From the IMG/VR virus record IMGVR_UViG_3300003877_000001, positions 261,855 through 325,854 of that record: a stretch of 64,000 nt of DNA; one strand, written 5' to 3'. Under the pieces are notes generated by a model that had not been told where the DNA came from, made no database searches, and worked only from the letters and a program-made list of their open reading frames with translations. This document shows positions 8,278 to 57,510 of the stretch, piece by piece. Position numbers and translations under genes: made by a program. Positions within the stretch are counted from its first letter, which is position 1; every line of letters starts with the position of its first letter.

Positions 8278-9315
8278 TTATAATTTTTTTATTAATTCAT
8301 TGAAATTCCTTTTAGTATTTTGAATTTCTTCAACATATTTTATTGAACCACGTTCCTTATTAACATATGAAAAATCTTCATTAAATGGATGATTTTTAAC
8401 ATATTGTGTTTTATTAAATAAATATTTTTGATCAAACACACCTGCATTATGAAATATGTTTGTTTTATAATATTCACTTAAATTCCCCGTTGCCCATGAA
8501 AAATCCATATCATTATGTATTACTGTTATATGTCCTAATTTCCATGCATTCCATATTACTGCCCACATATCCGCTGTCCATGATTGTATTGGGTGTTTTG
8601 GATTAAATTTATGTATAGTACTTGTCATTAATTCATATAGGTTCTCAGAATCACTTTCAACATTTTCCCAAAATTCAGCATCAGCATTTTTCATTATATA
8701 TTGTGCACCACCAGCATTACCATCCATATTTACAACTAATTCTGGATCAATATTCACAGTTTTACACATTAAATTAAATAATTCAGTACTTTTACTTTTA
8801 ATATATGTTGAATTTAAATATGATTTCGTATTACTAACAAACCAATCAGGAGTTAAATAGATATAATCATCATATGTTGGTTTTTCTCTAAATAGTACAT
8901 CTGGGTCTAAATAATAAAACATTCTAGACTCGTCTGGAAATTTAATAAAATGTTTTTTTAATATATGTGGTCTAATAGATGAGGAATACCTAGATTTTTC
9001 TCTTTCGTCTTTATATGTGAAAATTTTAACACCAGTTTCTTTTTGAATGTAATTTAACTTTGGACTTCTTCTATTTTTTATAGAAATCACATAACTTAAA
9101 TCATCTAAAATTCCTAGTCTTTTAAAATTATTAATTTGAACCAACATTTGCCATCTAAAATATGGGGTATCTGAAGTTGCCACAACATATTTCATATTAC
9201 ATATTTTATTTGTTGAATAATTATATTGTGTTAGTGTTGATTTAACATCAACACTATATTCTTCAATATATTCAGGTGGTATTGTTGTTAGTTTTTTAGT
9301 TAAAAAAAATGACAT
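8278..9315 (-). CDS. GT-A glycosyltransferase resembling protein O-glycosyltransferases (HPAT/SGT, GT95/GT96-like)
   Basis: YFRWQ, YLDPDVLF (DxD), GGAQY, WTADMWA, IFHNAG; alternative start MKYVV at 9195. Confidence 0.6.
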   Translation of the reverse strand: MSFFLTKKLTTIPPEYIEEYSVDVKSTLTQYNYSTNKICNMKYVVATSDTPYFRWQMLVQINNFKRLGILDDLSYVISIKNRRSPKLNYIQKETGVKIFTYKDEREKSRYSSSIRPHILKKHFIKFPDESRMFYYLDPDVLFREKPTYDDYIYLTPDWFVSNTKSYLNSTYIKSKSTELFNLMCKTVNIDPELVVNMDGNAGGAQYIMKNADAEFWENVESDSENLYELMTSTIHKFNPKHPIQSWTADMWAVIWNAWKLGHITVIHNDMDFSWATGNLSEYYKTNIFHNAGVFDQKYLFNKTQYVKNHPFNEDFSYVNKERGSIKYVEEIQNTKRNFNELIKKL

Positions 9316-9318
9316 AAT

Positions 9319-12300
9319 TTATATGAAAGTAATGTTATTATTTATACTGTATGGTATTTCTTCTCTTTCTATTAACACACCACCATCAAATGTTTTATAT
9401 AACCATTGTTTTTGTGATGAAAGATTATATGTTGTTGCCCACCAAGTATTTTCATCAAGAATATATGGTCTACCTGCTTGATTTATTTCAGGGTCAATAC
9501 CTATTGGTAATTCATGTATTGTCCAAGTATCACCACCATCATTTGTTATTGCAACAGATGCAGGGTCGTTAGTATATGAGGATATTATACCAAGATCTGC
9601 GTTTGCAAAATATATTGATCTTGTAAAAAATGGTACAGTTACATCAAACCAAGTAGCACCACCATCTGTTGATTTTTTTAAATCAACTTGTGTTGAATAT
9701 ATTGTATTACTATCTCCAATAGATATTGCTGGTGATGTTACTTGAGTTGTTGGTGCATATAATGATGTTCTATCAACCCATGTAGCACCACCATCATTTG
9801 ATATAAACATCCCTAATGGTTGATTAAACTGTGCAACAACTAAATCACCTAATGCATCAACAGCAATTACACCACCAAACCCAGTAAAAGGTATATCTGT
9901 TGTTGTTCTATTAAATGTAGCACCACCATCTGTTGATTTATATAAAAACCAAACATGAGAACTACTAATATTACCAACATATATGTTATTAACATCTTTA
10001 GTCGACATAACACCAAAACTTTCATTAAATGATAATGCAGTACCAAATGTTGGTTCTGTCCATGTTGCACCAGCATCTGTTGATCTTCTTACATGTGAAT
10101 CAACACCATTTATTAATCCATCTGAAGTTCTTACAGCAACAATTGTATTTGTATTTACAGCAATCACACCATAACTACCAATATTTGGGTCATCTAATGT
10201 CCATGTTTCACCACCATCATTACTAAAAGTATTTGAAGTATCACCATTAATAAAACCAAATGTTGTTGTAGGTGCTGCCGTAGTTGTTGTGGTTGTGGTT
10301 GTTGTAGGTGCTATCGTAGTAGTTGTTGGTGCTGTGGTAGTCGTAGTTGTAGTTGTTGTAATTTGAACACATGCAGGTGTGTCAAATGTTGATAATAACA
10401 ATAAATTATCTCTTTCTAATTGTGTTGACACACCAATGTAAATTAAAAAATCACTAACTCTTGTTGCATATGCAGAATCCGATAACCCACCTAAAGAAGT
10501 AAGTGATATTGCAGAATATGAAGAAAACGTATCATTAATATAATATATATTAGTTGTTACTATTGTTGAATTTCCACTTGGTTGTAATTCATTACACTTT
10601 AATTCGTGTCTTCTTGCATTAGTTGATGTTATTGTTGATACACAAATTAAATTAATTGACCATTCATATGTTGTTTGTGGTTGTACAACAATAAATGTAC
10701 TTCCATCATCCCCTAAATATTCTAAGTTTGAATCAAAATTTACACCTCTAGGATATCTAAATTTTTGTCTAGTAAATGCAGTATTTCTAATCAATATACC
10801 ACCCTTACCTAAAATTATTGTTGCTGGTAATAATTCATTTACAAATCTATTAAAGAATGCATTATATTGATTTATAAATGAATATAAATTACCGAAATTA
10901 TAACCATTACTTTGTAATGGGTTACCATTGGGAAGAAAACTTCTTTTTAAATATTCATCATAAATATGTTGTACTGTTGGATAATATCCACCAGTATTAT
11001 CAGTAATCGTTTTTCTTCTAGGTACATTAATTAATCTTCTAGTAATTAATTCAAGATATTCTAAGAAACTCATATCACCAATGTCAGGGAATGTTGAGTC
11101 TACAGGTAATAATGGTGGTACATAACTACCATCATCAATAATATAGTATGCACCAATAATAAAACCTAAATTTATTGATGATGGTAAGTATACTTGTTTT
11201 TTATTTAGTGGATTTAATGTAAAATCTGTTCCATTTTGCAACGTAATACCATTAACAGTTATTTTAATTGAGTCAAGATTAAATGCCGTAAAATCTAAAA
11301 CATAGATATATTTATTAATACCTGCATTATAATAGAATTTAGATGAACTAAATGAATCCACTCTAAACGCTTCTGATCTTTTTTCAGCATTAGAAGGTAA
11401 ACTACCATCTTTAATATACCATGTTCTAATAACTGGATTTGTTAATAAATATGCTTTTAAGTCGTTATTTTGTATAATTAATTTAGTGCGATCTAGAGTA
11501 TCAATCATAAAATCACCACTAAATAATGTTGTACCTTTAGTCATTGTTATACCGTTAATAACTAATTGAACATCACCTTTAGGTTCTTCAGGAAGTTGAA
11601 GAACAGCACCAGCAGATAATACCGTAGGTGCTTGAACCAAATATTCTACTTGTGTATATCCAGTATTCCCAAGTCTATTATATAAATATGTTACAGTTAT
11701 CACATCTTGACCTGTTGTTGCACTAACGGCAGTTGCAGGATTAATAGTAACAGTACCAAGGTTATTATCAAAATTATAATCTGTTGTTGGTGTTAATGTT
11801 ACCCCATTATAATTCATTTGAATGGCACTCCCACTCATAGGTATTTCAGGTAAATTAAATGTTGTAGGATCATCTACTTCCAATTCCATATTAATATAGA
11901 TATATGGACTTGTTGTACCTGTTGAAGTAATTGGTGAATCAATAAATTTATTATAACAAAATACGTCATATTCAATTCCACGTGCAGTATCTAATGTTAC
12001 ATCAACTTCCTTAGTATTTATAATTAATTTACTATCTTCCTGATAATAATTAGGTGTTGATGGATGAATCCTTTCAATAAATCCACCTTCTACCCATGAT
12101 TTTTTATTATCAATAGTTCTATTTACATCAAATCCCATGTTTCTAAAATTATCGATATATGCTTGTCCATTATCACTATTACCAGATATTTGAAAATAGA
12201 AATCATCAGTTTCTACTGGTGCAATAGGATATCCATCCCCATCAAATGGAAATGATGCTGAAGGTATGTCTTCCAATGACAATTCTACATCATTAGGATT

Positions 12301-13740
12301 TATTTTACCATCAACAGTATAAACATATTCAGTAATATTAATAAATGGTTCAGGAATACCAATTAATTGAAACATCGATTTTATTGCATGTCTAGTACCT
12401 TTAGACTTCCAATAATAATTAGTATTAATTAAAATTCTTCTCCAAAGTTCAATATCGATTTCAGCAGGAAGTAAATCGTTTTCACCAAATTCTTTTTCAG
12501 ATGAAAAGAATGCTTCGGTTACATCTTGTTCTGTTACTAAATCAAAAACATCCCAACCCATTGTTTTAGCTAAGTTTCTAACTAAAATATCTGGAATATT
12601 ATTCTTTTTATCATATGTTGTTTTATTGATATTAACAATAGCATCAATAAATAATCTTAATTCATCAAATTCACGACCATATATTCTTAATAACTTAGTC
12701 ATTTTACCTTCATCAGTAAGATCATAAAGTTTTAAAGAAGCTGGTGTTAAAAATCTTGCAATTAAATCGGTTTTTACTTTATCATATGAAGTACCAATAC
12801 TTAATATTGTTGTTAAAAAGGTTTCAAATAGTGAACCTTGAATATTTGGATTATAATTATCTGTTGTATTCCATAATATATTTACATCACCATAAAAAAC
12901 ACCACCAGTATCTAAAATAGTTACTTTTTTTAATTTTATTTGAAACCCACTATAATCTGCTAATCTATTAGATATGAAATATGTTTCCAATTGATTTGAG
13001 TTCTTTAAAAATTTATTATATTCTAAAACATTTGGTTTCATATGAAAATTAACTGAACCAGTTGTTGCACCTGATAATGTTGGAAATGGATTACCTTGTA
13101 CTGTTAATTCAATCCAAGGTGTATTTACTGTGTCACCAGTAAAACCAAGAACATTATGTGTATTATTTTCAGGATCAGTACTTTGCCAAATAACAAAATT
13201 TTCATAACTTAAATTAAGATTTCTTAATTTATTATCTATTGGATTTGATAAGTTCCCATTATCAAATATTATTGTAAATGTGTTTGAAACTACGGATGAT
13301 AACATTCTAAAATTTGACGTATCAGTAAATGGATCATATGTAAAATTATAGAACGTATCAGTACCATTACCTTGTGAATCAAGATATATACTTGCAGGAT
13401 AATTTTTTATAATTTCATCTATGGTTACTCTAAAAAGTTCAGCAGCAGAACCGAATCTAACATATGATTTAATATCCGATTTATCGAAATTTAATGTTAC
13501 TGTATTTGTAAAATCAAATATATCTTGTGATTGATTATTATCAATACCTAATGTTTCTAATGTAATTGGATTTGAAAACGAACTTAAAGTATTTGAATAA
13601 TCTCTAGTCTTTTTGCCTGTAAAATTTGACTTAACAACAAAATCACCCAATGAGAACACCGTTTCCGATGCTACATTAGTAAAATTTCCACCAATTAGGT
13701 CTTGATTCTGACCTTTATTTATAACCTTTTTTCTAGCCAC
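9319..13740 (-). CDS. large baseplate wedge-like protein with poly-Thr linker and C-terminal BNR/Asp-box propeller
   Basis: GTG start; LAKTMGW...WRRILINTNYYWKSKGTRHAI (P2 gpI/wedge-like); Thr tract ~10261-10360; SxDGGxTW repeats in the C-terminal ~310 aa. Confidence 0.7.
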   Translation of the reverse strand: MARKKVINKGQNQDLIGGNFTNVASETVFSLGDFVVKSNFTGKKTRDYSNTLSSFSNPITLETLGIDNNQSQDIFDFTNTVTLNFDKSDIKSYVRFGSAAELFRVTIDEIIKNYPASIYLDSQGNGTDTFYNFTYDPFTDTSNFRMLSSVVSNTFTIIFDNGNLSNPIDNKLRNLNLSYENFVIWQSTDPENNTHNVLGFTGDTVNTPWIELTVQGNPFPTLSGATTGSVNFHMKPNVLEYNKFLKNSNQLETYFISNRLADYSGFQIKLKKVTILDTGGVFYGDVNILWNTTDNYNPNIQGSLFETFLTTILSIGTSYDKVKTDLIARFLTPASLKLYDLTDEGKMTKLLRIYGREFDELRLFIDAIVNINKTTYDKKNNIPDILVRNLAKTMGWDVFDLVTEQDVTEAFFSSEKEFGENDLLPAEIDIELWRRILINTNYYWKSKGTRHAIKSMFQLIGIPEPFINITEYVYTVDGKINPNDVELSLEDIPSASFPFDGDGYPIAPVETDDFYFQISGNSDNGQAYIDNFRNMGFDVNRTIDNKKSWVEGGFIERIHPSTPNYYQEDSKLIINTKEVDVTLDTARGIEYDVFCYNKFIDSPITSTGTTSPYIYINMELEVDDPTTFNLPEIPMSGSAIQMNYNGVTLTPTTDYNFDNNLGTVTINPATAVSATTGQDVITVTYLYNRLGNTGYTQVEYLVQAPTVLSAGAVLQLPEEPKGDVQLVINGITMTKGTTLFSGDFMIDTLDRTKLIIQNNDLKAYLLTNPVIRTWYIKDGSLPSNAEKRSEAFRVDSFSSSKFYYNAGINKYIYVLDFTAFNLDSIKITVNGITLQNGTDFTLNPLNKKQVYLPSSINLGFIIGAYYIIDDGSYVPPLLPVDSTFPDIGDMSFLEYLELITRRLINVPRRKTITDNTGGYYPTVQHIYDEYLKRSFLPNGNPLQSNGYNFGNLYSFINQYNAFFNRFVNELLPATIILGKGGILIRNTAFTRQKFRYPRGVNFDSNLEYLGDDGSTFIVVQPQTTYEWSINLICVSTITSTNARRHELKCNELQPSGNSTIVTTNIYYINDTFSSYSAISLTSLGGLSDSAYATRVSDFLIYIGVSTQLERDNLLLLSTFDTPACVQITTTTTTTTTAPTTTTIAPTTTTTTTTTAAPTTTFGFINGDTSNTFSNDGGETWTLDDPNIGSYGVIAVNTNTIVAVRTSDGLINGVDSHVRRSTDAGATWTEPTFGTALSFNESFGVMSTKDVNNIYVGNISSSHVWFLYKSTDGGATFNRTTTDIPFTGFGGVIAVDALGDLVVAQFNQPLGMFISNDGGATWVDRTSLYAPTTQVTSPAISIGDSNTIYSTQVDLKKSTDGGATWFDVTVPFFTRSIYFANADLGIISSYTNDPASVAITNDGGDTWTIHELPIGIDPEINQAGRPYILDENTWWATTYNLSSQKQWLYKTFDGGVLIEREEIPYSINNNITFI

Positions 13741-13837
13741 TGATAATTTCTTTCATATAAATACAATTAAAGAAAAAACCCCAACATTTTTGTTAGGAAT
13801 TTTTTTAATTATAAATACTATAAAATTTTATAAAAAT

Positions 13838-15182: not shown

Positions 15183-15626
15183 TTATGTGTTGTTTAATAT
15201 ATTAAATTTAGCACCACCAGCATATTTTTCCAATTCAGAAATATTTCTAATATCTTGTAATCTATAGACATTTTGAAAAACTGGTAATGATTGTCTTATT
15301 ATAAATACATTATTATCAATTTCTGGTTTATCAATAATATTTTGTTTTACTTCATCCTTAATAATTTTATAATCACTAAAATTATTCGGATCATCATATC
15401 CTAATGAATTAAACGAAAATGTTGTTGTTTTATTTATTACATCATCAACATAAGTAATTCCACCAATATAATATGTCCAAGTGGTGGGTGTTTGTGTTAA
15501 TAATCCGTTAACACCATCATTTATATTTGGGTCAGTAGAAGTAAAATATAGTTCACTAAGCGTACCTGTAACTGTGAACTTTCTTAATTCAGATAATCGA
15601 GATGAAGATGTTCCTGTAACTATCAT
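15183..15626 (-). CDS. hypothetical protein (structural cluster)
   Basis: 147-aa ORF coupled to the upstream GT gene. Confidence 0.6.
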   Translation of the reverse strand: MIVTGTSSSRLSELRKFTVTGTLSELYFTSTDPNINDGVNGLLTQTPTTWTYYIGGITYVDDVINKTTTFSFNSLGYDDPNNFSDYKIIKDEVKQNIIDKPEIDNNVFIIRQSLPVFQNVYRLQDIRNISELEKYAGGAKFNILNNT

Positions 15627-16519
15627 TATATTTTATTTAAATATTCAGATTCAAATTCTTTTATTATATGTGAATATTGTGGAAAAAATTTATTAATTTT
15701 AAATTTAATTTTTTCAATAACAATATCTTTATATTTAGTATAACTCCATAAATGAGCATAACCGATTTCATCGGCAATTTGAAACCAATTATAATTTCTT
15801 TTTTCAATCTCTTTAATGGGTATTATTTCAAACGGTTCTACATTATTTTCTTTTAAAATGTAATGTAAGAGTGATTGTTCCGCAATTAAAAACATACCTT
15901 CATATTTTTTTCGATTACTTTTAAAATCACCATTAGTTGAAATATCAACTAAAATTTCTTTTACTTTATTTGCATATATGTTTTTTAATTTCATATCACT
16001 AAATCCAACAACCCCACAATTATATGCTGCTAAATTATATTTATTCCAATCAATTCCATGATTATTCATTTTATCAAATGGATTTTTTGATCTCGAATAA
16101 ATATCATGAAAATGATTACCAATTGTTTTATCATTTTCAAGTGATTGAACAGCCACTTTATACCTTCCACTAGTAATATTATCACCAATAATGTCTCGAA
16201 ATAAAAGTACATCTCCATCGATATGTATATATGGTTCTGTCATTAATATATGTGTTTTAATTTTTCCCCAAATCCAAAACTTACTACTAACCCCATCCGA
16301 ATCAAAATCAACAATATGTATTTTATCATACGGTATCATTGAATATAGATTATATGCATGTTTATCACAATATAATTCAATAACATATCCTAATTTTTTT
16401 ATTAAAATTACACTCATTAAATAAGTGTAAAAGTTTTTATTTAAATATTTTATATCATAATCGTTATCAAAATTATCTTTTATTGATGGTGTTGACCATA
16501 TTGAATGTATATATTTCAT
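15626..16519 (-). CDS. GT-A fold glycosyltransferase (DUF6734-like)
   Basis: IHSIWS, LYCD, WIWGKI, YIHIDGDVLL (DxD), YNCGVVG, AEQSLL, YAHL. Confidence 0.65.
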   Translation of the reverse strand: MKYIHSIWSTPSIKDNFDNDYDIKYLNKNFYTYLMSVILIKKLGYVIELYCDKHAYNLYSMIPYDKIHIVDFDSDGVSSKFWIWGKIKTHILMTEPYIHIDGDVLLFRDIIGDNITSGRYKVAVQSLENDKTIGNHFHDIYSRSKNPFDKMNNHGIDWNKYNLAAYNCGVVGFSDMKLKNIYANKVKEILVDISTNGDFKSNRKKYEGMFLIAEQSLLHYILKENNVEPFEIIPIKEIEKRNYNWFQIADEIGYAHLWSYTKYKDIVIEKIKFKINKFFPQYSHIIKEFESEYLNKI

Positions 16520-16528
16520 CCTTATTTA

Positions 16529-16771
16529 TTATATAAAATTATCATCTAATAATAGTGATTCGCCAATACCCTGAGTAAACTCATCGTATTCACCATAGTA
16601 CCCATAGGGTATTACAACATCGAAGAAACCAAAATCGATGTCTCTTGCAGTTAACATTATTTTAAAATTATATAATATAGATAAATCGGGAATTTCAACA
16701 TAACAATCTATACAACCAGTTGTAGAACCCGTTGTCATAATTCTTTGTACTTGTTTTTTTATTAATTCCAT
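16529..16771 (-). CDS. hypothetical protein
   Basis: 80-aa ORF in operon-like packing. Confidence 0.55.
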   Translation of the reverse strand: MELIKKQVQRIMTTGSTTGCIDCYVEIPDLSILYNFKIMLTARDIDFGFFDVVIPYGYYGEYDEFTQGIGESLLLDDNFI

Positions 16772-16773
16772 TA

Positions 16774-18627
16774 TTAAACACCAAGATTAACCTTTTTACG
16801 TAAAATTACTTTAATATCTTTTTCGGGATATTTTATTTCAAACATACTATCTTCTGCGGAATATATTGTTTGATTTACAACTTCAATTTCACCAGTTATT
16901 GGATTACTAATTGTTTGTTCAATTGGATTTACAGAATATTGACCACCAATCTTATTAAATATTTTAACTGAAAGAATATTTACCACATTAGTAACATTAT
17001 TTATAACCTCAACTAATGGTGTTATAAATATATCTTCATTCATTTGATGATTATTAATATCAAAGTAATCTCTTACTGAAGTAATTACTGAATTAGCTAT
17101 TTGATTATCATTATTTTCATTTACAAACAATTCAATAATAAACCCTAAATTGAAAATTCTACCGTCACGAACTTCAATATAGTCATTAACCATTCTAAAT
17201 TCAGTAAGATATTCGGTCATATTAGATTTTAATAAACTATTAGAGGTGTTATTTAATTTACCATCAGAACCAACACCAAGAATTGGTATTATAATTTTAT
17301 TATTTTCTCTAAATGCATTTGCTCTAAAAGGTGAACCAAATTTACCATCCATTTCAAATACTTGAAATAAATAATCATTTATTTGTACATTTCTTCTTTG
17401 TGATGAAAAATTATATTTAGTTAAATTTCTTATTTGTTCAATAGATAAACCATCATTTCCACCAATTGCTGGAATTGGGTTGTTTACGGTTAAACTTCTT
17501 TTTACTTGTTGATTAAAGTCTTGACGAGAACCGTTTACATTAATTGTTACAGTACCTAATGATGTTAATGTATTTGCACCTAAATTTGATGCACTACCAC
17601 CACCTGTTTTATATCTAACAAATAACGTGAAACCTGCTTTTAATTTCTCACCTAATGCGGTATTTTCAAGATAGTTATTTAAAAATTGTTGATTTGTAAC
17701 ACCTGCCTTTAAAAATCCTTCTTTAAAAGCATCTAATTCACCATTACCCCCACCAAAAGTTAATTCACAAAAACCATCTGCTGTAAATTCTTTTATAAAT
17801 TTTTGGGTTATGTCTATCCAAATACCTGCTTTTATTCCAGTATTTCCAATTGTTAAATTATTTGTACCACCATTAGGGTCTTCTACAAAAACTCTTTGTT
17901 GTGCTAACCAATCAACCTCTTCATATCTATTATCTTGATTATTAAATTCTGCTTCGTTGGGGTTTCCAGAGAAATTAGTACCAGCTAATAATATTACATC
18001 AGACACTACTAATACATCCGGATCTGGAAGTCTTAATATATAAAAAGGAACTACTTCATTAGTAGTAATTGATTTTCTTAATATACTAGATGCACCATTA
18101 ATTACAACCTCTCTTTTGGTTATTTGATAATTACGAATAATACCATTAGAATCTAATTGTGGTATTATTGATCTATTTGGTGCTCCTAATGCTGAAAATG
18201 GGGATGCAAAATCAATTACTTCATCATTCTCAAATGTTTTACCACCACCAACTACTTGTGATTGTGGTGATATTGTTGGATAATAATCAGCATCTGGTTG
18301 GTCGCCTTTAACTGGTACAGTAACAATATAATCAACAACAGTAACTGAAGGTCTTTTAGCTGGAATATTAAACCCCATATTTTTAGCAATTCCAAGTACT
18401 GATTCGGTTTGTTGTGCATATTCTAATTGAGTTTCTTGGAATGCACGATCTGTGTTGGTTGCTAAATTATTTGCAACACCTGCATTAAGATCAATAAGCA
18501 TTGATCCCACATTAGAATCAGTAAAATCAGTAAGAACTTCAGGATAGTATTCCTTAACTAATGTTATTAATTCTTCTTTTATTTCACTAAATGTTCTTTT
18601 TTGAAAATTTACTCTATTGTCTCCCAT
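16774..18627 (-). CDS. baseplate wedge protein (T4 gp6 / P2 gpJ-like)
   Basis: NFQKRTFSEIKEELI...DFTDSNVGSMLID, IAKNMGF, LTFGGG, GGNDGLSIEQIR; follows the gp25-like gene. Confidence 0.85.
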   Translation of the reverse strand: MGDNRVNFQKRTFSEIKEELITLVKEYYPEVLTDFTDSNVGSMLIDLNAGVANNLATNTDRAFQETQLEYAQQTESVLGIAKNMGFNIPAKRPSVTVVDYIVTVPVKGDQPDADYYPTISPQSQVVGGGKTFENDEVIDFASPFSALGAPNRSIIPQLDSNGIIRNYQITKREVVINGASSILRKSITTNEVVPFYILRLPDPDVLVVSDVILLAGTNFSGNPNEAEFNNQDNRYEEVDWLAQQRVFVEDPNGGTNNLTIGNTGIKAGIWIDITQKFIKEFTADGFCELTFGGGNGELDAFKEGFLKAGVTNQQFLNNYLENTALGEKLKAGFTLFVRYKTGGGSASNLGANTLTSLGTVTINVNGSRQDFNQQVKRSLTVNNPIPAIGGNDGLSIEQIRNLTKYNFSSQRRNVQINDYLFQVFEMDGKFGSPFRANAFRENNKIIIPILGVGSDGKLNNTSNSLLKSNMTEYLTEFRMVNDYIEVRDGRIFNLGFIIELFVNENNDNQIANSVITSVRDYFDINNHQMNEDIFITPLVEVINNVTNVVNILSVKIFNKIGGQYSVNPIEQTISNPITGEIEVVNQTIYSAEDSMFEIKYPEKDIKVILRKKVNLGV

Positions 18628-18629
18628 TT

Positions 18630-19028
18630 TTATATTGTTAACGTTATACTACCTGTTTCACTAAATACATCTTCTGAATATTTAAACTCTACAAGAATAT
18701 TAATTTGATTATCACCAATATCATCACCAATATCATCAGTATCACTAAAAAATGTTACTTTTGATATTGTAAGTTGAGGTATAAACAATTTTACTGTTTC
18801 TCTTATTTCTTCTTCGATATCACTTTGTGTCACACCATCTTTAGGTTCAAAAAGATATTTTCTAATATTAACCCCATACTCAGGTTCATAATATCTCTCA
18901 CCCTTTTCAGTTAATAATAATAATATTAAATTTGAAGTTAGTGCTTCTTTTGTAATACTATTCATTTTAAATAATCTGTTAGTTACGTTATCATCCTCTA
19001 ATGGAAATTTAATATTTATTGTATTCAT
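18630..19028 (-). CDS. baseplate protein gp25/GPW-like
   Basis: NLILLLLTEKGERYYEPEYGVNIRKYLFEP. Confidence 0.9.
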   Translation of the reverse strand: MNTINIKFPLEDDNVTNRLFKMNSITKEALTSNLILLLLTEKGERYYEPEYGVNIRKYLFEPKDGVTQSDIEEEIRETVKLFIPQLTISKVTFFSDTDDIGDDIGDNQINILVEFKYSEDVFSETGSITLTI

Positions 19029-19057
19029 CTTTTTGTTTTTTATAAATACATATAAAG

Positions 19058-19085
19058 AAAAAATCCGACTATTTAGGTCGGATTT
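19058..19085 (-). terminator. intrinsic terminator
   Basis: AAATCCGAC-TATTTAG-GTCGGATTT stem with minus-strand T-run; GTATTTATA follows at 19041-19049. Confidence 0.75.
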
Positions 19086-19105
19086 ATAATAATATTTGTA
19101 GATTT

Positions 19106-19261
19106 TTATTCCATAATGACCATATATTCAAAATCAGATTCAAAAGTTGTATTTATTTTTGTTAAATATAAATAATTATAACCAGTATCATCATATATAA
19201 ACCCATTTTCAGGGTAATTATCCTTCTCCATTTTCTTTTCTTTTTTTCTCTTCTTCCCCAT
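19106..19261 (-). CDS. small hypothetical protein (51 aa), below ORF-track cutoff
   Basis: MGKKRKKEKKMEKDNYPENGFIYDDTGYNYLYLTKINTTFESDFEYMVIME*; fills the gap before the terminator. Confidence 0.4.
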   Translation of the reverse strand: MGKKRKKEKKMEKDNYPENGFIYDDTGYNYLYLTKINTTFESDFEYMVIME

Positions 19262-19631
19262 CTTTATTATATTTTTCATTAAATTTATTTTTCATTTCTT
19301 CAATTAATTCCTCTTGTTTTTCAATAATTTCTAAATATTGTTTACTAACATCTTTAAATTCTTTATTTAATTCTTTTAGTTCTGTTTCACCATTTTCTAT
19401 GTTAGCAACTAATCTTAATTTATGATCCTCTTCTTCTAATTTTAACATTCTTTCTTTTGCTCTTAAATTAAGTTGTTTTGCATCATTACCATCCATAGTG
19501 GATGCCAATTTATGTATTTCATTTATTTTATTGATTGAATCAACACCTTTACTTGCATCGCCACTTTCAACAGCTTGTTTTAAATTTTCTAAAAAATTAT
19601 TTTGTGTTCCTTCTTGTAATTTTTTTTTCAT
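19218..19631 (-). CDS. coiled-coil hypothetical protein
   Basis: K/E-rich heptads. Confidence 0.6.
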   Translation of the reverse strand: MKKKLQEGTQNNFLENLKQAVESGDASKGVDSINKINEIHKLASTMDGNDAKQLNLRAKERMLKLEEEDHKLRLVANIENGETELKELNKEFKDVSKQYLEIIEKQEELIEEMKNKFNEKYNKDGEEEKKRKENGEG

Positions 19632-21200: not shown

Positions 21201-21267
21201 AATTATAAGTTTTTATATTTTATTATTATTAACTATAAATAGTCATAACTTCTGAAACTAGATTAAT

Positions 21268-22644: not shown

Positions 22645-22736
22645 ATTTTATAATTTTTTATAATTTATTATAAATACGATGAAAATTTTAAAAATCACAA
22701 TTTTTATCAAAAATAAATGATTTATTTTAAAACAGC

Positions 22737-22769
22737 AAAACTCGGTACATATCTTGATGTATCGAGTTT
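22737..22769 (-). terminator. hairpin / putative terminator
   Basis: AAACTCGGTACAT-ATCTTG-ATGTATCGAGTTT. Confidence 0.55.
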
Positions 22770-22807
22770 CGAATCCTTTTCTTCCTTATATGGTAAGATA
22801 GAGAAAT

Positions 22808-23212: not shown

Positions 23213-23224
23213 ATTTTTATATTT

Positions 23225-24998: not shown

Positions 24999-25050
24999 AA
25001 ATACTCACTAATTGTTTTTTATTTAAACACTTTTGATTATATCTCATAAA

Positions 25051-25908: not shown

Positions 25909-25918
25909 AATTCTTTAT

Positions 25919-28359: not shown

Positions 28360-28401
28360 ATATTTAATTAAGAATAATATTATATTCTAATATAAATACC
28401 T

Positions 28402-45360: not shown

Positions 45361-45369
45361 GTATTTATA
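45361..45369 (+). promoter_or_regulatory. phage GTATTTATA promoter motif (plus-strand copy)
   Basis: GTATTTATA 3 nt before the ATG of the only credible plus-strand gene. Confidence 0.6.
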
Positions 45370-49906: not shown

Positions 49907-52114
49907 TTATTGAAGTTTATCTTTTTTCTTTATTAATATGCTACCATTTGGTGATGTTATTGCACTACCACTTCTAGCTGTTCTAAATCCAACCAAATCT
50001 AAACTATCACCTGCTGTTAAAGTAATTAATATTGTTGGTAAATTTATTGTACCAGCAGCGTTATTCCTAGAAGTCCAACCTGCTGATGTAGCATTATCGA
50101 TTGTTGTGGCATTATTTAATATTAAATTAGTACCAATTGATTTATCTGTATTATTACCAGATTGATTAAATGGTATATTATAGTTAATTTCATAATCACC
50201 AGTATCATTAATTATTATTTGACTACCACCAGTCCATGAGTATGCTGAATCAATAATTACACTACTATCCCATAATATTGGAGTTGCAATAATACTATTT
50301 AAATTAGTACCACCAGTATGTATTAAGAATAATTCATTTGATTGTGTACTTGCGGTATAACCCGTAAATATTATGGTATCTAATTTAGTATCTGTAATTC
50401 CAGATATATTTGTGATATCAATAGTGTTTTGTGTTGTTTCAGCAGATATTGCTAGTATATCTATGATATTCTGATCTGTTTTTGCCGAAACAGCATCAAT
50501 ATCAATTCTCAATTGACCAGTATCAGCAGTTACAGTCGCTAACGTGTTTTCAATATTTGTTATTCTTGTATCGGTAATGGCACTATATGAGATAAATACA
50601 CTTGTTTCCAACTTATTTGCTAACGCATCACCTAATGTATTTCCTGTTGAAATATCTATATTTAATTGTGTACCGCTCCAACTTATACTCTCACCAGCAA
50701 CATTAGCACCATCAAATGTGATAACACCACTAGTAATATCTATACCAACACCTGCTGTTAATACACCAGCTTCACTAAATTGTGTAAAGTTTAATTCATC
50801 AACACCAATATTAACAGGATCTATGGCAAGCAATACCCAACCAGAACCCCCGTATGTTGTACCTGTTTCAGTAAATGTAAATGCACCTGCTGTAACATTT
50901 GGATTATCAAAATCATTTGCTCTTGCAAATGTATTAACACCAGATGAATAAATATATATACCATTATCAATTTTATTTGTTTGATCTTTAACTAATATTC
51001 TCCACCCATCTTGAATTGTAATACCATCAATAGAACCACCAAATGTACCTAATGTTAAGTCAATATTTGTGGTTGTTACAACTCTAACAGATTCTTTTAA
51101 ATCTAAACCAGAACCTATTGCATCAACATATCCTTTATCTACTAATGATCTAACAGTAAAGTTTGTACTATAATCACCTCCATATTCAAGACCTTTTGCT
51201 AATATTCTTAAATCAGTAAACACAGCATTTGTACCACCAGTAACAGTAATATTCACATCACCAACAGCAGTATATGCATTTAAATCTAATTCAATTATAT
51301 CATTATTAGTTAATTGATTAGAATTAATACCAGCACCACCACTTAAAATATCTTGTTTATTTGCTGTTGTTGCAGACAATATTACAATATTTGATGTGTT
51401 TATATCTGTTTGACCACTAACTATTTGTATATTAGTAGTGTTTTGAATAACATCCCCACTAATAGTAATTATATCCCCTTCAATATTTGTTATTCTACTA
51501 TTTGTTGTTGCAGTATATCCAGTAAATTCATTTTTTGTTATATTATTATTTGTTAATCCAGATAATTCAATTGCAACATCTGATTCACCTTCGGTTCTTT
51601 GTAATTCTAATACTGTATTATTTAATGTACCACCAGACACATAAATATCAATAGGTGTTGACCCTGTTAAATCGGCAACACTATAACCACTATCAATTAA
51701 ATTACCACTTACATCAAATTCACCAACATTACCAGTTGCACCTGTAACAATATTAATTTTATTATCTAAATCTGTTTGAGTTTGTGCTGTATACCCACTA
51801 AAAATTGTAAAGCTAACTTTAGTATCTATATCTGTTTGAGTTTGTGCAGTATATCCTGTAAATATATTATAATTAATTGAATCATCTGGCGATATAGGTG
51901 TAATATGATCTAACCAATTATTAATATTTTGGTCAGTATTTGGAACTACATCAGTACCCCCAGTTATTCTCCACAAATAAAGTGGTTGTATTTCAGGGAT
52001 TACAAAATCACTAAATAATGATTGTTCAGTTCCACCTGTTGAATTATTAGTAGGGTTTTCTCTTACTATTGTATTACCAAAATCGGTACGATAAATTAAA
52101 TATCTAAATGCCAT
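49907..52114 (-). CDS. fibre protein with coiled stalk and C1q/TNF-like tip
   Basis: SLVDKGYVD..SGLD.K, DGWRILVKDQ..NGIY, IINDTGDYEINYNI. Confidence 0.7.
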   Translation of the reverse strand: MAFRYLIYRTDFGNTIVRENPTNNSTGGTEQSLFSDFVIPEIQPLYLWRITGGTDVVPNTDQNINNWLDHITPISPDDSINYNIFTGYTAQTQTDIDTKVSFTIFSGYTAQTQTDLDNKINIVTGATGNVGEFDVSGNLIDSGYSVADLTGSTPIDIYVSGGTLNNTVLELQRTEGESDVAIELSGLTNNNITKNEFTGYTATTNSRITNIEGDIITISGDVIQNTTNIQIVSGQTDINTSNIVILSATTANKQDILSGGAGINSNQLTNNDIIELDLNAYTAVGDVNITVTGGTNAVFTDLRILAKGLEYGGDYSTNFTVRSLVDKGYVDAIGSGLDLKESVRVVTTTNIDLTLGTFGGSIDGITIQDGWRILVKDQTNKIDNGIYIYSSGVNTFARANDFDNPNVTAGAFTFTETGTTYGGSGWVLLAIDPVNIGVDELNFTQFSEAGVLTAGVGIDITSGVITFDGANVAGESISWSGTQLNIDISTGNTLGDALANKLETSVFISYSAITDTRITNIENTLATVTADTGQLRIDIDAVSAKTDQNIIDILAISAETTQNTIDITNISGITDTKLDTIIFTGYTASTQSNELFLIHTGGTNLNSIIATPILWDSSVIIDSAYSWTGGSQIIINDTGDYEINYNIPFNQSGNNTDKSIGTNLILNNATTIDNATSAGWTSRNNAAGTINLPTILITLTAGDSLDLVGFRTARSGSAITSPNGSILIKKKDKLQ

Positions 52115-53969: not shown

Positions 53970-55472
53970 TTATGAACTAGCAATTGTTGTTATAGTACCT
54001 GATGATCCAACAAATTTTAATGCACCATTTTCAACATATAATGTTCCACCTCCTGTTGGTGTTGATGGTGTTGCACTTTGATTTATCATAAATACCGCAC
54101 CTTCTAAATGTAATTTTTCTTGCCCTGTTTGTCCTGTGATTCCTGTTGCACCTGAACCTATAATTAAATTTCCAGTACCATTAATAAATTGACTTGCAGT
54201 TTGTGCAAATCTTACTCTAGGTTCTACTGCACACCATCCAAAAGCAATTGAATTTGTAGTATTATTTGTTACATATGTACCATCATTAATACCATTACCT
54301 ATCATGAATGCACCTTGTGCACCTGCACATGCAAAATCACCTAATACTGTCGCATGTGTTCCATTTGCATGAGTAACCGCACCAATTGCTACTGCAAAAT
54401 TACCTTGTGAACATGCTTCTCTACCTATTGATATCGAACAAACACCTAATGCTGCTGCTAAATGACCAATTGCCACACCACTAGATGTATTACTATATGA
54501 TGAGACACCGACAACTGTTGAAGAATTACCATATGACCTATTTCCACTTCCAACACTTAATGATGATGCGTTTGTTGATCGTGAAGCGAAACCAATTGCA
54601 ACAGCACAATTACCTACATTTGTTGTACATGCACCATCACCAATTGCAATTGATGTATTTGCACATGCAATTGCTGCTACGCCAATTCCAATAGTATTTA
54701 CTCCAATAGATTTAGATAAATTACCTATTGCAATACTACCACTACCAATTGCTTGATTTGTTGTACTATAATTTGCTCTACGACCAATTGAAATGTTATT
54801 TATACCTGTTAACCCAGTCCCATTATTACCACTAAATATACCAATAGAAATAGATTCACTTGCACCAACATAAGCACTATTACCTATTGCTATTGAAGAT
54901 GTTGTTGCATTTTCACATGCATTACTACCGATTGCAATACCAGCAGAACCAAACGCATTAGCACCTGAACCAAATGCATTAGCACCTGAACCTGTTGAAT
55001 GTGCATTCCTACCCATTGCTAATGATGATGTGTTTGTTGCACATGAACTACTACCAATAACAACCGAATAACTACCAGATGCGTGTGTATCTGCACCCAA
55101 AGCAACACTTCTACTTCCAGATGAAATTGCAACTGAACCCAATGAAACCGAACACGTTGCTAATGCATCTGCTTGATAGCCTATTGCAAGTGATCTGTCA
55201 CCAAATACTTGTGCAGAATGTCCTATTCCAACTGAACCTAACCCCCCATTTGTTGTTGTATTTTGACCTAGTTCTACCGAACTAAGTGTGTTATTACCTG
55301 CATTTAAAAATGAAGTACCACTAATTTGAAAACCAGAATCACTAGTTATTATTCCACCATTTTCTACTTGTAGTTCACCATGTACTTCTGTAATACCATT
55401 AAGTGTTAGTGTTTCTCCTGAAAATTGTTCAAATTTATCGTTACTTAAATTCGGTTTAGTATCGAATGCCAT
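53970..55472 (-). CDS. YadA/Hep_Hag-like head-repeat fibre protein
   Basis: ~14-aa AxGxxSxAIG repeats over ~330 aa. Confidence 0.75.
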   Translation of the reverse strand: MAFDTKPNLSNDKFEQFSGETLTLNGITEVHGELQVENGGIITSDSGFQISGTSFLNAGNNTLSSVELGQNTTTNGGLGSVGIGHSAQVFGDRSLAIGYQADALATCSVSLGSVAISSGSRSVALGADTHASGSYSVVIGSSSCATNTSSLAMGRNAHSTGSGANAFGSGANAFGSAGIAIGSNACENATTSSIAIGNSAYVGASESISIGIFSGNNGTGLTGINNISIGRRANYSTTNQAIGSGSIAIGNLSKSIGVNTIGIGVAAIACANTSIAIGDGACTTNVGNCAVAIGFASRSTNASSLSVGSGNRSYGNSSTVVGVSSYSNTSSGVAIGHLAAALGVCSISIGREACSQGNFAVAIGAVTHANGTHATVLGDFACAGAQGAFMIGNGINDGTYVTNNTTNSIAFGWCAVEPRVRFAQTASQFINGTGNLIIGSGATGITGQTGQEKLHLEGAVFMINQSATPSTPTGGGTLYVENGALKFVGSSGTITTIASS

Positions 55473-55561
55473 ATTATTTCTATTTTTTCTCTAAATTCTT
55501 ATCAGATTAATAATACCTTTCATTAACCTTTTCTATAAATACTTTTAAAGATTTTAGAAAT

Positions 55562-55597
55562 AAAAAAAGTCCCAAATAAATTACATTATTGGGACTT
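55562..55597 (-). terminator. intrinsic terminator
   Basis: AAGTCCCAA...TTGGGACTT with T-run; GTATTTATA at 55534-55542. Confidence 0.6.
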
Positions 55598-55699: not shown

Positions 55700-56605
55700 T
55701 TATTGTTTTTTCAATGATTCCATAATTTCATTAATATCAAATAAATTTATTGTATTATATGGAAATTCTTGAATTGTTCCCGTAATATTATATTGCTCTA
55801 AAAATGAAAACTTATTCATTTCATAAATTTTATCAGCACTAGGTCTTATATTATCATGAATTTCATAACCAAAAACTTTTGGATCATTTGAAATCCAACA
55901 AACTGTTGAAGGTAAATCTAATGCTGCTGCCACATGCTGCATAAATGAATCAATTAATAATCTCTTTTTAGAAAATGTCATTACTGCATATAATTCTCTA
56001 TGTGGTAATGTTACTGCTTCAACATTTCTTAATGCTGGTTGTTCAGGTAATCTTATATGTAATATTCTATAAGATTTTGAATAATAATCAGCCAATTTTT
56101 GTGCAATTTCAATCGGCATATCTCTTGCCCACGATTTTTTTGAATATTGACTATTTGGTAATCCACCATGTGTTTGTAATATCATAATTGGTTTACCTTG
56201 TTCTGGTTTAATCTTATCTTTAGCTATTTCAATTTCTCTTGGATTTAAATATATTTTAGGCATCTCACCATTAAATGGGATATTAAACATATTTGCCCAT
56301 ATTTCATTTAAATGTTTTTCTCTCAATAAATAACTTTGCTCATGATAAGGGTCATGTTGAAAGATTAAAACATCTTTATTATGAATATAATCATCATAAA
56401 AATAATTATTTAATTGATCAAATGTATAAAATCTATATATGTTTTTATTATTTCCATAAAAAGGACCGTCCCAAGAAGAAATTACAATTATTTTTCTATC
56501 TGGATATTTTTTTTTCATTGCAGCAATTACTGCTGTACTCATGATACATTTACCATGTCCACCAGCCACGATTAGGCAAATGTACCTATCTTTTACTTCT
56601 TTCAT
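55700..56605 (-). CDS. GT9-like (heptosyltransferase-fold) glycosyltransferase
   Basis: GGHGKCIMST....MKKKYPDRKIIV; LIDSFMQHVAAALDLPSTVCW. Confidence 0.75.
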   Translation of the reverse strand: MKEVKDRYICLIVAGGHGKCIMSTAVIAAMKKKYPDRKIIVISSWDGPFYGNNKNIYRFYTFDQLNNYFYDDYIHNKDVLIFQHDPYHEQSYLLREKHLNEIWANMFNIPFNGEMPKIYLNPREIEIAKDKIKPEQGKPIMILQTHGGLPNSQYSKKSWARDMPIEIAQKLADYYSKSYRILHIRLPEQPALRNVEAVTLPHRELYAVMTFSKKRLLIDSFMQHVAAALDLPSTVCWISNDPKVFGYEIHDNIRPSADKIYEMNKFSFLEQYNITGTIQEFPYNTINLFDINEIMESLKKQ

Positions 56606-56646
56606 AATTTTTAATTTTTCTCTAAAATAATAAGATTATAATCTAT

Positions 56647-57510
56647 TTATATAATTCCTTTTACTATTGATATTTCATCAATAAAATTAGTAACATCTTG
56701 AAATCTTTCATTTTCAAGTTTTTCAATATAATCACCATTGAATACTGTTAAATCTCTTGTTCTAGGACGATCTAATTTACCTTCTCTTATAGTATGTAAT
56801 GATTGTGGTGCAAACCCATGATGCATATCTTCTTCAAATAATGTTTGCTTAACATTTTCAAAATCATGTTCATATCTAGGAAGTCCTAATTCATCATAAA
56901 TTCTATTAAATGTTTCTGTTGGATATGTTAACATGTCGTTGTAAGGAACAAACACAATTCTATCTCTATGATTCCTATACATCATCTCTCTTAGCTTTAA
57001 TATTGATAATCCAAACACACCATCATCTTTAACAAAATTTTCAGCACGACCCACCGTAGTCTGTTCATTTAAAAAATTACCATTATCCCCATGATTATTT
57101 AATGTTGACTTTCTATTCATTTTTTCCATCGAGATAACACAGTCACCAATATGTCTAATTGGAAATATTATTTTAACATCACACCCAAATACTTCATCAA
57201 GAAAATCTTCCATTCCAGCCCACGCTCTATTTTTATCAATTGGTAACAACCCTTCTAATACTTCCTTTTCATAATACCCAATCATCATATTTTTGAGCAT
57301 TGTTTTTATTTTAGGATATATATATTTTTCACCATTTGATTTATATATATCATTTACTCTCCAATTATCTCTAATTCCAATTACCGAACTAACTAATCCT
57401 GATGTTGGTGTTGGGGATAATTTGGGGTTTTGTGCTAAGATATTAGCTAATAATGTACTACCAGCTCTAGGAAATCCTGCCATGAACAATACTTTCTGTT
57501 TTTTATTCAT
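56647..57510 (-). CDS. PAPS-dependent sulfotransferase
   Basis: 5'-PSB loop GFPRAGSTLLANILAQNP; DKNRAW; 3'-PB IRHIGDCVIS. Confidence 0.85.
   Translation of the reverse strand: MNKKQKVLFMAGFPRAGSTLLANILAQNPKLSPTPTSGLVSSVIGIRDNWRVNDIYKSNGEKYIYPKIKTMLKNMMIGYYEKEVLEGLLPIDKNRAWAGMEDFLDEVFGCDVKIIFPIRHIGDCVISMEKMNRKSTLNNHGDNGNFLNEQTTVGRAENFVKDDGVFGLSILKLREMMYRNHRDRIVFVPYNDMLTYPTETFNRIYDELGLPRYEHDFENVKQTLFEEDMHHGFAPQSLHTIREGKLDRPRTRDLTVFNGDYIEKLENERFQDVTNFIDEISIVKGII

Follow-up and report, generated by a model that had tools for sequence, protein, structure and literature searches.

The baseplate and fibre end of a 326-kb jumbo phage from a hydrothermal-vent metagenome (IMG/VR record IMGVR_UViG_3300003877_000001) encodes four predicted glycosyltransferases and a sulfotransferase. 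These genes lie within the stretch of 64,000 nucleotides analysed here (positions 261,855 to 325,854 of the record, hereafter the window). All five ORFs were confirmed on the minus strand, and they and their surroundings are as follows.

5857-6909 (-): 350-aa protein with a T5/T8/T14 linker at aa 72-104 (nt 6598-6696); predicted acceptor.
8278-9315 (-): GT-A-fold glycosyltransferase of the PHROG 4417 family; predicted poly-Thr-directed protein O-glycosyltransferase.
9319-13740 (-): 1473-aa structural protein ending 3 nt before the GT-A ORF, with a poly-Thr linker at aa 1128-1154 (nt 10279-10359) followed by BNR-like 'DGG.TW' repeats; predicted acceptor.
13779-13798 (-): terminator-like hairpin closing the baseplate/DUF6734 unit; promoter motifs at 13756 and 13810 lie around it, ahead of the 1473-aa gene.
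15626-16519 (-): DUF6734 protein with a GT8-like GT-A fold, co-transcribed with the baseplate wedge genes (no terminator lies between 19041 and 13798 on this strand).
16774-19028 (-): baseplate wedge genes, gp6/J-like (16774-18627) and gp25/W-like (18630-19028), heading the operon that contains DUF6734.
19041-19049 (-): GTATTTATA promoter motif of the baseplate operon; the preceding terminator is at 19061-19085.
21268-22644 (-): GT-B (GT1/GT4-like) glycosyltransferase, a core gene of the lineage with its own promoter motif at 22669-22677.
49907-52114: fibre-like gene.
53970-55472 (-): 500-aa YadA-head-like repeat fibre protein downstream of the GT9-like gene; its N-terminal ~40 aa are conserved in relatives.
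55562-55597 (-): hairpin plus T-run terminator after the GT9-like gene; the next promoter motif is at 55534-55542.
55700-56605 (-): GT9-fold (heptosyltransferase-like) enzyme, a conserved island inside the fibre module.
56647-57510 (-): PAPS-type sulfotransferase, an accessory gene.
57533-57541 (-): promoter motif of the sulfotransferase-GT9 unit.
57563-57593 (-): hairpin plus T-run terminator after the 843-aa fibre gene.
57615-60146 (-): 843-aa fibre protein upstream of the sulfotransferase.

Enzyme folds, operons and sequence motifs

The original prediction, made from sequence alone, was right in what it observed: all five genes encode the fold classes it named, and four of them lie in baseplate or fibre transcription units. 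The exception is the GT4-like gene, whose neighbours are not recognisably structural, as that prediction had implied. The GT-A at 8278-9315 had no Pfam hit and matched no curated glycosyltransferase family HMM, but it matched PHROG 4417, listed as 'unknown function', at 5e-65. Its AF2 model (pLDDT 87.6) resembled the retaining GT-A enzymes UGGT, glycogenin, GT6 and LgtC in the PDB, while its nearest Swiss-Prot folds were plant hydroxyproline O-arabinosyltransferases, which are peptide O-glycosyltransferases (TM about 0.6, E 1e-9). The motif D137-P-D139 is invariant. Homologues are about 305 aa long, so the true start is probably M41, near 9195. The protein at 15626-16519 matched Pfam DUF6734 with 83.7 bits, and its Atlas structure neighbours are GT8 (TM 0.6-0.64). 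For the protein at 21268-22644 the Glyco_trans_1_4 hit was below its cut-off, yet PHROG 7162 'glycosyltransferase' scored 2.6e-32 and its Atlas neighbours are phage GT1-family GT-B proteins (TM 0.7-0.85). The protein at 55700-56605 had no Pfam hit, including to the Pfam GT9 model, but the top matches of its AF2 model (pLDDT 81.9) were all GT9. The sulfotransferase matched Sulfotransfer_3 (48.6 bits) and Sulfotransfer_1 (38.6 bits), both above their cut-offs, and its PAPS-loop residues are invariant.

The sulfotransferase-GT9 pair has its own promoter motif, 23 nt upstream of the sulfotransferase start, and is bounded by hairpin-T-run terminators. The motif GTATTTATA occurs 25 times in the window against 4 expected, but it is genome-wide (78 copies, in all gene classes), so it is the general promoter of the phage and not one dedicated to this pair. 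Poly-Thr runs of 8 or more occur in only two of 448 called proteins, those at 9319-13740 and 5857-6909, which flank the GT-A. The [ST]GxT motif is 4-7 times over composition in the fibre proteins, and in 43 of 64 cases it follows a hydrophobic residue, against a background of 0.38. It looks like a structural beta-strand/turn repeat. No test linked it to any of the glycosyltransferases, and the idea that it is a glycosylation sequon is not supported.

Outside the window the phage carries a 14-kb sugar cluster, at 15.9-30 kb of the genome, encoding GMD, WecB, two DegT-like proteins, methyltransferases, three GT2 proteins, Glyco_tranf_2_5 and a second, weak sulfotransferase hit (Sulfotransfer_2). 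None of its proteins has a predicted membrane segment, and it lies on the same strand, between fibre and baseplate genes once the record is circularised. The phage also encodes HldD, above its cut-off, as well as HldE-kinase-like and adenylyltransferase-like genes that score below their equivalog cut-offs but are the best NCBIfam hits. HldD was found in only 3 of 13 relatives, and no APS kinase was found in the phage. The phage has the capacity to make complex and possibly sulfated glycans.

Distribution of the genes and association with poly-Thr tracts

Whether the presence of the glycosyltransferases tracks motif-rich structural proteins had been set out beforehand as a test, and for the GT-A and poly-Thr tracts it gave the strongest new evidence. 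The GT-A is present in 7 of 13 large relatives, and in-frame poly-Thr tracts of 6 or more occur in exactly those 7; including the window's own genome this is 8/8 against 0/6 (Fisher p = 3e-4). The homologous upstream proteins in genomes G002 and G004 carry T6 at the same place as the linker of the 1473-aa protein. On a GT9 tree, GT-A-positive and GT-A-negative genomes are interleaved. Of 63 non-identical IMG/VR loci with the GT-A, 50 have a same-strand poly-Thr tract within 6 kb, usually at the 3' end of the gene just upstream (within 1 kb upstream of the GT in 37 of these), while 13 have none within that distance; the figure is 5 of 62 in control fibre loci (p = 5.6e-17). These counts include related genomes and mosaic modules, so the p-values overstate independence. 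In six of six cultured phages inspected, the homologue sits in or beside the structural module next to poly-Thr-bearing proteins; the tracts include C-terminal tails of major tail proteins (VPE25, iLp84, SA2 and TPWB06) and of a major capsid protein (iLp84).

The five genes nonetheless have different phyletic patterns. The GT4-like and GT9-like genes are core (13/13), whereas the GT-A is in 7/13 and DUF6734 in 4/13, and these two are mutually exclusive in the relatives. The GT9-like family comprises 858 homologue clusters at about 60% identity, and fibre-gene homologues flank it in 60 of 62 loci, making it a conserved island inside hypervariable fibre genes. A distant homologue directly follows the tail fibre gene of pelagiphage HTVC112P. 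The sulfotransferase is rare (4/62 loci) and absent from most relatives, but it lies directly 5' of the GT9-like gene in all seven distinct related loci where it was found: L020, L021, L022 (these three re-checked by tblastn), a 212,892-bp Logan contig, L063, L064 and L065.

Proposed acceptors and alternative readings

It had been proposed that an initiating O-glycosyltransferase, extending glycosyltransferases and a sulfotransferase together build a sulfated glycan coat on the virion, for shielding, adhesion or mimicry of host substrates; our results support this only in part. Virion protein O-glycosylation is the best reading for the GT-A, but given the phyletic patterns the five genes appear to be separate modules and not one pathway. 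A Bacteroidota host and mimicry of sulfated host glycans are not supported either, since the source is a hydrothermal-vent metagenome and host evidence is only suggestive. We favour, with moderate confidence, a model of several separate glycan-modifying modules expressed together with virion genes. In the best supported of these, the GT-A would be a cytoplasmic protein O-glycosyltransferase that puts sugar on the poly-Thr linkers of the structural proteins encoded beside it (9319-13740 and 5857-6909), as mucin-type or extensin-type glycosylation does, with the likely effect of stiffening and protecting these linkers and putting glycan on the tail surface. In a second module the GT9-like enzyme would probably use ADP-heptose, for which the phage has part of the pathway, and act on a fibre-related acceptor, and in a minority of phages, this one included, the adjacent sulfotransferase would add sulfate from host PAPS to the same product. 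DUF6734 and the core GT-B enzyme would form two further modules, with acceptors as yet unidentified. While the folds, motifs, operon structure, synteny and co-occurrence are demonstrated by our analysis, every acceptor, every donor and the presence of glycan or sulfate on virions are inferred, without direct evidence that any virion protein is modified, and the sulfation step remains unproven.

Alternatively, some or all of the enzymes, above all the GT9-like enzyme with the sulfotransferase and the distant sugar cluster, could remodel host LPS or capsule during infection, using host lipid carriers and export, and so block superinfection or stop progeny re-adsorbing to debris. The GT9 model indeed best matches the LPS core heptosyltransferases WaaF, WaaC, WaaQ and OpsX (E 1e-9), more closely than the protein heptosyltransferases TibC and Aah (E 1e-4 to 1e-5), and the ADP-heptose genes and O-antigen-like sugar cluster resemble envelope polysaccharide loci. 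Receptor-modifying genes also commonly sit beside tailspike genes in temperate phages, as in P22 and the Shigella phages, so synteny alone does not fix the acceptor, which for this pair could be the fibre or host LPS. Yet a hydropathy scan of the genome found no flippase, polymerase, ligase or polyprenyl-phosphate transferase-like multi-pass membrane protein, the genes sit inside late structural operons and not in a moron or lysogeny region, the GT9-like gene is a core gene held at about 60% identity inside otherwise hypervariable fibre genes, and the association of the GT-A with poly-Thr has no place in this scenario, which we consider doubtful.

It also seems unlikely, though possible, that the sulfotransferase acts not on a glycan but directly on protein, by tyrosine O-sulfation of a fibre or host protein, or on a small molecule. 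The best solved relatives of the family profile are the protein-tyrosine sulfotransferases TPST1 and TPST2 (E 3e-9 to 3e-7), followed by the PKS sulfotransferase CurM, and its nearest relatives in cultured phages are cyanophage 'sulfotransferase' genes that are not next to fibre genes. However, the similarity covers mainly the shared PAPS-binding core, strict adjacency to the GT9-like gene points to a shared product, and the weak hit in the sugar cluster is of the carbohydrate type. Glycosylation of modified bases in the phage genome, as by the T4 alpha- and beta-glucosyltransferases, is very unlikely. The core GT-B enzyme does have distant relatives in Phapecoctavirus glycosyltransferase clusters beside primase and polymerase genes, and it lies at the border between structural and nucleic-acid-metabolism genes. 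Nevertheless, no thymidylate-synthase-like hydroxymethylase was found in the genome, nor any TET/JBP hit, although the control for the latter search was uninformative; four of the five genes are in baseplate or fibre units, and the GT-A tracks poly-Thr proteins.

Relation to known glycosylation systems

The 'moraphage' jumbo phages (PMC12619734) are likewise large aquatic phages, probably of Bacteroidota, in which four glycosyltransferase orthogroups are core genes of unknown role; heat-shock genes are reported in all moraphages, whereas no HSP70 was found in this genome, so that membership is doubtful on present evidence. By analogy only, the Mimivirus fibril and chlorovirus capsid glycans are also made by a virus-encoded, membrane-independent set of nucleotide-sugar enzymes and many glycosyltransferases that decorates the particle surface, but those are eukaryotic viruses and sulfation is not a known feature there. 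The GT9-like enzyme shares the GT-B fold of family GT9 with the LPS core enzymes WaaC, WaaF and WaaQ, to which its model is closer, and with the autotransporter heptosyltransferases TibC and Aah. The latter set a precedent for a GT9 enzyme modifying beta-helical adhesins in the cytoplasm, and the neighbouring genes here are YadA-like repeat fibres, although donor and acceptor are inferred.

The plant hydroxyproline O-arabinosyltransferases (HPAT, RDN, PLENTY; GT95) are the best characterised fold match of the GT-A and, like the enzymes of mucin-type or serine-rich-repeat adhesin O-glycosylation, are initiating peptide O-glycosyltransferases acting on low-complexity repeats. Identity is only 14-16%, however, and the plant enzymes are Golgi membrane proteins that act on hydroxyproline, whereas here the enzyme is soluble and the associated repeat is poly-Thr. 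In mycobacteriophage virion O-glycosylation (Freeman et al., 2023, Cell Host Microbe; cited through PMC12619734 and PMC13313380), phage-encoded cytoplasmic glycosyltransferases are likewise thought to modify Ser/Thr-rich segments of structural proteins. The enzyme family predicted here, from sequence and structure models alone, is a different one (PHROG 4417, an HPAT/GT8-like GT-A with no Pfam model), its hosts are outside Actinomycetota except for the Arcanobacterium phage, a sulfotransferase and a GT9-like enzyme are added, and in the jumbo phage the predicted acceptors are internal poly-Thr linkers of baseplate and fibre proteins. In iLp84, VPE25, SA2 and TPWB06, by contrast, the poly-Thr lies at the C-termini of capsid and tail-tube proteins, the same sites reported for the mycobacteriophages.

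Predicted folds and genomic context of the five enzymes

The 325,854-bp IMG/VR record, of which the window is the last 64 kb, is rated complete by CheckV and was assembled from a hydrothermal-vent metagenome. GC content is about 27% and almost all genes lie on the - strand. Near-DNA searches of the window against cultured phages found nothing, so that no cultured phage is close at the DNA level. The first gene of the record is a paralogue of the fibre genes at the right end of the window; the record is therefore a circular permutation, and the fibre block of the window continues into positions 1-38 kb of the record. Membership of the moraphages is doubtful given the absence of HSP70, and host assignment through the GDP-mannose dehydratase was ambiguous, since the best hit (72%) was a 9-kb contig binned to Prolixibacteraceae while the remainder (45-51%) were spread across several phyla.

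The original prediction held as an observation, in that all five genes were confirmed to encode the predicted fold classes:

8278-9315, predicted GT-A-fold nucleotide-sugar glycosyltransferase (GT8/GT24/GT95-like), PHROG 4417
15626-16519, DUF6734 protein, GT8-like by model
21268-22644, GT-B (GT4-like) glycosyltransferase
55700-56605, predicted GT9-like enzyme
56647-57510, PAPS-type sulfotransferase

The GT-A protein matched no Pfam or NCBIfam model, its only hit being PHROG 4417, listed as "unknown function". However, an AlphaFold (AF2) model built on 18 homologues reached pLDDT 87.6 and matched retaining GT-A enzymes in the PDB, with Foldseek matches at E 1e-7 to 1e-9 to UGGT, glycogenin, LgtC and HPATs; in Swiss-Prot its best matches were the plant hydroxyproline O-arabinosyltransferases (TM about 0.6, E 1e-9). 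D137-P138-D139, read from sequence alone as the DxD metal/nucleotide-sugar motif, is invariant in the 18 homologues. As homologues are about 305 aa, translation probably starts at M41. The protein at 15626-16519 is identified by Pfam DUF6734, and its Atlas model resembles GT8 enzymes, whereas that at 21268-22644 gave a weak Pfam GT1 hit but clearly belongs to a large, phage-specific GT-B family. In some relatives (for example G005, positions 238602-241094, and one Atlas entry) this GT-B gene is interrupted by an insertion of about 380 aa with LAGLIDADG features; an intein in a glycosyltransferase suggests that the gene is indispensable.

The GT9-like protein gave no PF01075 hit even at E 1, and against the NCBIfam heptosyltransferase equivalogs only N-terminal 60-aa hits far below the cut-offs. 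Sequence and profile searches against the PDB were likewise uninformative, and only the fold search was productive: the model (pLDDT 81.9) matched GT9 or GT9-like chains in its top 32 PDB matches, and heptosyltransferases or PnsB1 in its top 13 Swiss-Prot matches. It may be that the canonical N-terminal catalytic Asp of GT9 enzymes is replaced here (GGHGK), although this is no more than a suspicion and we base no claim on it. The sulfotransferase is secure, with PF13469 at 48.6 bits (cut-off 27) and PF00685 at 38.6 bits (cut-off 22). Residues G12, P14, R15, G17, T19 and R119...S127, corresponding to the 5'-phosphosulfate loop and 3'-phosphate motif that bind PAPS, are invariant in 16 homologues, and the loop aligns with that of TPST. 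No APS kinase was found in the phage genome, so PAPS must be supplied by the host.

Baseplate wedge genes lie at 16774-19028. On the - strand, a promoter motif at 19041 precedes a unit made up of the gp25-like gene, the gp6-like gene, an 80-aa gene, DUF6734, a 147-aa gene and a 300-aa gene, and no terminator-like site appears until 13798-13779. The GT-A ORF begins 3 nt after the 1473-aa structural gene (9319-13740). The sulfotransferase-GT9 pair lies between an 843-aa fibre gene (57615-60146) and a 500-aa YadA-like gene (53970-55472), with a promoter motif 23 nt upstream and hairpin terminators on both sides. The promoter-like motif, GTATTTATA, is strand-specific and occurs 25 times in the window (4 expected) and 78 times in the genome, mostly 12-35 nt before start codons of all gene classes. 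We therefore take it to be the phage's general promoter, and the idea of a promoter dedicated to the sulfotransferase-GT9 pair was rejected. The neighbours of the GT4-like gene are small unknown ORFs and RNA-repair-type genes. Other features of the window are:

4550-5845 (-), 431-aa protein made of seven or eight near-identical ~48-aa 'delta-60'-like repeats (NTDGSVDNSFNIGSGF...); relatives carry Pfam DUF5122 in fibre genes next to the GT9-like gene
25051-25908, HAD domain of the RNA-repair type
28402-30186 (-), CCA-adding tRNA nucleotidyltransferase (PolyA_pol head plus RNA-binding domains), although the window holds no tRNA gene
40438-44544 (-), SNF2-family helicase ORF of 1368 aa, against 596-598 aa in relatives; it shows LAGLIDADG-like and Hint-like stretches and so probably carries one or two inteins
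44578-45252 (-), homologue of the CBASS inhibitor Acb3 (PF25187, 121.7 bits), an anti-defence gene between the fibre block and the helicase
45373-46227 (+), the only sizeable + strand gene in this part of the window, with a GIY-YIG-like N-terminus and repeated NUMOD-like motifs judged by eye, preceded by the promoter motif at 45361; probably a free-standing homing endonuclease, such genes lying next to the GT9-like gene in relatives

Association of the GT-A gene with poly-Thr tracts

Only two of 448 called proteins have poly-Thr runs of 8 or more, and they flank the GT-A: the 1473-aa structural protein (9319-13740) and a 350-aa protein (5857-6909). We examined 13 large relatives, chosen because they carry the GT9-like gene, of which seven have the GT-A. 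A search for six consecutive ACN codons hit exactly those seven genomes and none of the other six, while the backwards control pattern hit all genomes alike. The hits inspected (in relatives G002, G004, G005, G007, G009, G011 and G012) are in-frame poly-Thr or Thr/Ser mucin-like linkers of up to about 100 residues, and in seven of the eight GT-A-positive genomes they lie in the gene immediately upstream of the GT-A. Including the window's own genome, the comparison is 8/8 against 0/6 (p = 3e-4). In the partial contigs (G014-G025), which cannot show absence, hits to the six-ACN pattern in G015 and G025 turned out not to be poly-Thr in any ORF. On a GT9 tree, GT-A-positive and GT-A-negative genomes are interleaved, and the pattern is therefore not a single clade split.

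A larger sample agreed with this. Of 63 non-identical IMG/VR loci with a GT-A homologue, 50 have a same-strand poly-Thr tract within 6 kb, and 37 of these lie within 1 kb upstream. In 62 control fibre loci the figure is 5, and at least three of those five lie in genomes shown to carry the GT-A elsewhere (p = 5.6e-17).

The association also held in the six cultured phages inspected. In Lactobacillus phage iLp84 the gene lies between the capsid and connector genes; the major capsid protein ends ...VPTTTTTTTSK, the major tail protein ends ...ETTTTTTTSK, and a 129-aa protein just upstream is full of T7-T10 runs. The major tail proteins of Enterococcus phage VPE25, Staphylococcus phage SA2 and Arcanobacterium phage TPWB06 end in T8-T10, and Lactobacillus phage Lpa804 and Chryseobacterium phage MA9V-3 have poly-Thr or Thr/Ser proteins just upstream of the gene. 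In SA2 (locus L154, 5667-5930) and TPWB06 (locus L156, 5720-5926), a small ORF encoding almost only poly-Thr overlaps the 3' end of the major tail protein gene directly upstream of the PHROG 4417 gene, and may be a frameshift extension of the tail tube protein. The predicted acceptor proteins are not homologous to one another, so simple hitch-hiking is unlikely.

The GT9-like gene, the sulfotransferase and wider glycan capacity

The GT9-like protein has 858 homologue clusters at about 60% identity, many on contigs of 200-365 kb. In 60 of 62 IMG/VR loci its gene is flanked by homologues of the window's fibre genes, upstream of the SNF2 helicase and the PolB polymerase, and a distant homologue directly follows the tail fibre gene of pelagiphage HTVC112P. 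The sulfotransferase, in contrast, is present in only 4 of those 62 loci, and none of the 13 large relatives has a homologue next to GT9. Yet wherever it occurs it is immediately 5' of the GT9-like gene, once with a homing endonuclease between them, and the two genes therefore probably share a product.

Outside the window, positions 15909-29900 of the record hold a 14-kb sugar-biosynthesis and glycosyltransferase cluster. It encodes a PfkB kinase whose best hit is heptose-7-phosphate kinase, WecB, GDP-mannose 4,6-dehydratase, two DegT-like proteins, a GNAT, FkbM-type and other methyltransferases, three GT2 proteins, a Glyco_tranf_2_5 protein and a weak Sulfotransfer_2 hit. None of these has a predicted membrane segment, and the cluster is flanked by fibre, tape-measure-like and baseplate genes. 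Parts of an ADP-heptose pathway are also encoded, namely HldD at 152479-153456 (344 bits, cut-off 274.6) and, below their equivalog cut-offs, an HldE-domain-II-like adenylyltransferase at 66469-66891 and the kinase-like gene at 15909-16688; no GmhA-type SIS domain was found, and only 3 of 13 relatives have HldD. ADP-heptose is thus no more than a possible donor for the GT9-like enzyme. Near the HldD gene, at 156039-156566, lies a small RelA/SpoT-like protein with hydrolase-domain similarity (66.5 bits to TIGR00691). All 13 relatives carry one to nine GT2 genes, often clustered and sometimes next to the GT-A.

Phyletic patterns differ between the five genes. The GT4-like gene is present in 13/13 relatives at 56-64% identity and the GT9-like gene in 13/13 by selection, whereas the GT-A is found in 7/13, DUF6734 in 4/13, in genomes that lack the GT-A, and the sulfotransferase is rare. 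The five genes are therefore separable modules and not one pathway.

Interpretation and comparison with known systems

The proposal that these enzymes together build a sulfated O-glycan coat on the virion was only partly supported. Folds assigned by models and profiles, invariant motifs, gene order and co-occurrence are the results of this analysis; catalysis, donors, acceptors and the presence of any glycan or sulfate on virions are inferred. Virion O-glycosylation is well supported by comparative evidence for one enzyme, and we conclude that PHROG 4417 is most probably a poly-Thr-directed virion protein O-glycosyltransferase. In the literature searched, no paper linked poly-Thr, PHROG 4417, DUF6734 or a sulfotransferase to phage tail proteins. 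The further suggestion that [ST]GxT acts as a glycosylation sequon was rejected as unsupported: the motif is enriched, but it sits in hydrophobic-[ST]G.T repeat units of fibre proteins, and as all relatives carry GT9 and GT4 they offer no presence/absence contrast. Mimicry of glycans of a Bacteroidota host is also unsupported.

For the GT9/sulfotransferase pair, modification of the virion is plausible, but modification of the host envelope is a real rival. The GT9 model is nearer to LPS heptosyltransferases (E 1e-9) than to the autotransporter (protein) heptosyltransferases TibC, Aah and BAHTCr (E 1e-4 to 1e-5), and the sulfotransferase profile is nearest to protein-tyrosine sulfotransferases, so that a protein may be the target of sulfation. 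Against seroconversion or O-antigen modification of the Gtr or Wzy type, which would call for a multi-pass membrane flippase, polymerase or transferase, a hydropathy scan of the genome found no protein with more than 5 hydrophobic segments, and the only 5-segment protein is an 835-aa tape-measure-like protein. Sulfation of a virion glycan remains a minority reading. We likewise consider unlikely, although not excluded, the view in which the GT9-like enzyme heptosylates the phage's own tail fibres and the adjacent sulfotransferase sulfates that glycan, which would be the first sulfated glycan known on any phage particle. Separately, PHROG 4417 would be a widespread poly-Thr-specific virion O-glycosyltransferase family extending virion glycosylation from actinobacteriophages to phages of Bacillota and Bacteroidota and to jumbo phages. 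A sulfated, heptose-bearing fibre glycan would be a new kind of phage surface chemistry.

Virion glycosylation is experimentally known only in some actinobacteriophages, where it alters antibody recognition. If PHROG 4417 enzymes glycosylate poly-Thr tails, the trait is much more widespread, and would occur in Enterococcus, Staphylococcus and Lactobacillus phages that are used or considered for therapy and that matter in food fermentation, where it could affect immunogenicity, stability and adsorption. The prediction also gives a family of "unknown function" a concrete role that can be tested cheaply in cultured phages, and the GT-A together with an adjacent poly-Thr tract provides a simple genomic marker for candidate glycosylated virions in metagenomes.

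With regard to known systems, T4-type DNA glycosylation requires a pathway that makes a hydroxylated base as acceptor, and no thymidylate-synthase-family gene was found in the genome; a TET/JBP search also found nothing, although neither did its control. As in the mycobacteriophage type of virion O-glycosylation, the predicted phage glycosyltransferase (GT-A) is genetically coupled to Ser/Thr-rich segments of structural proteins, across the related genomes, the IMG/VR loci and the six cultured phages alike.
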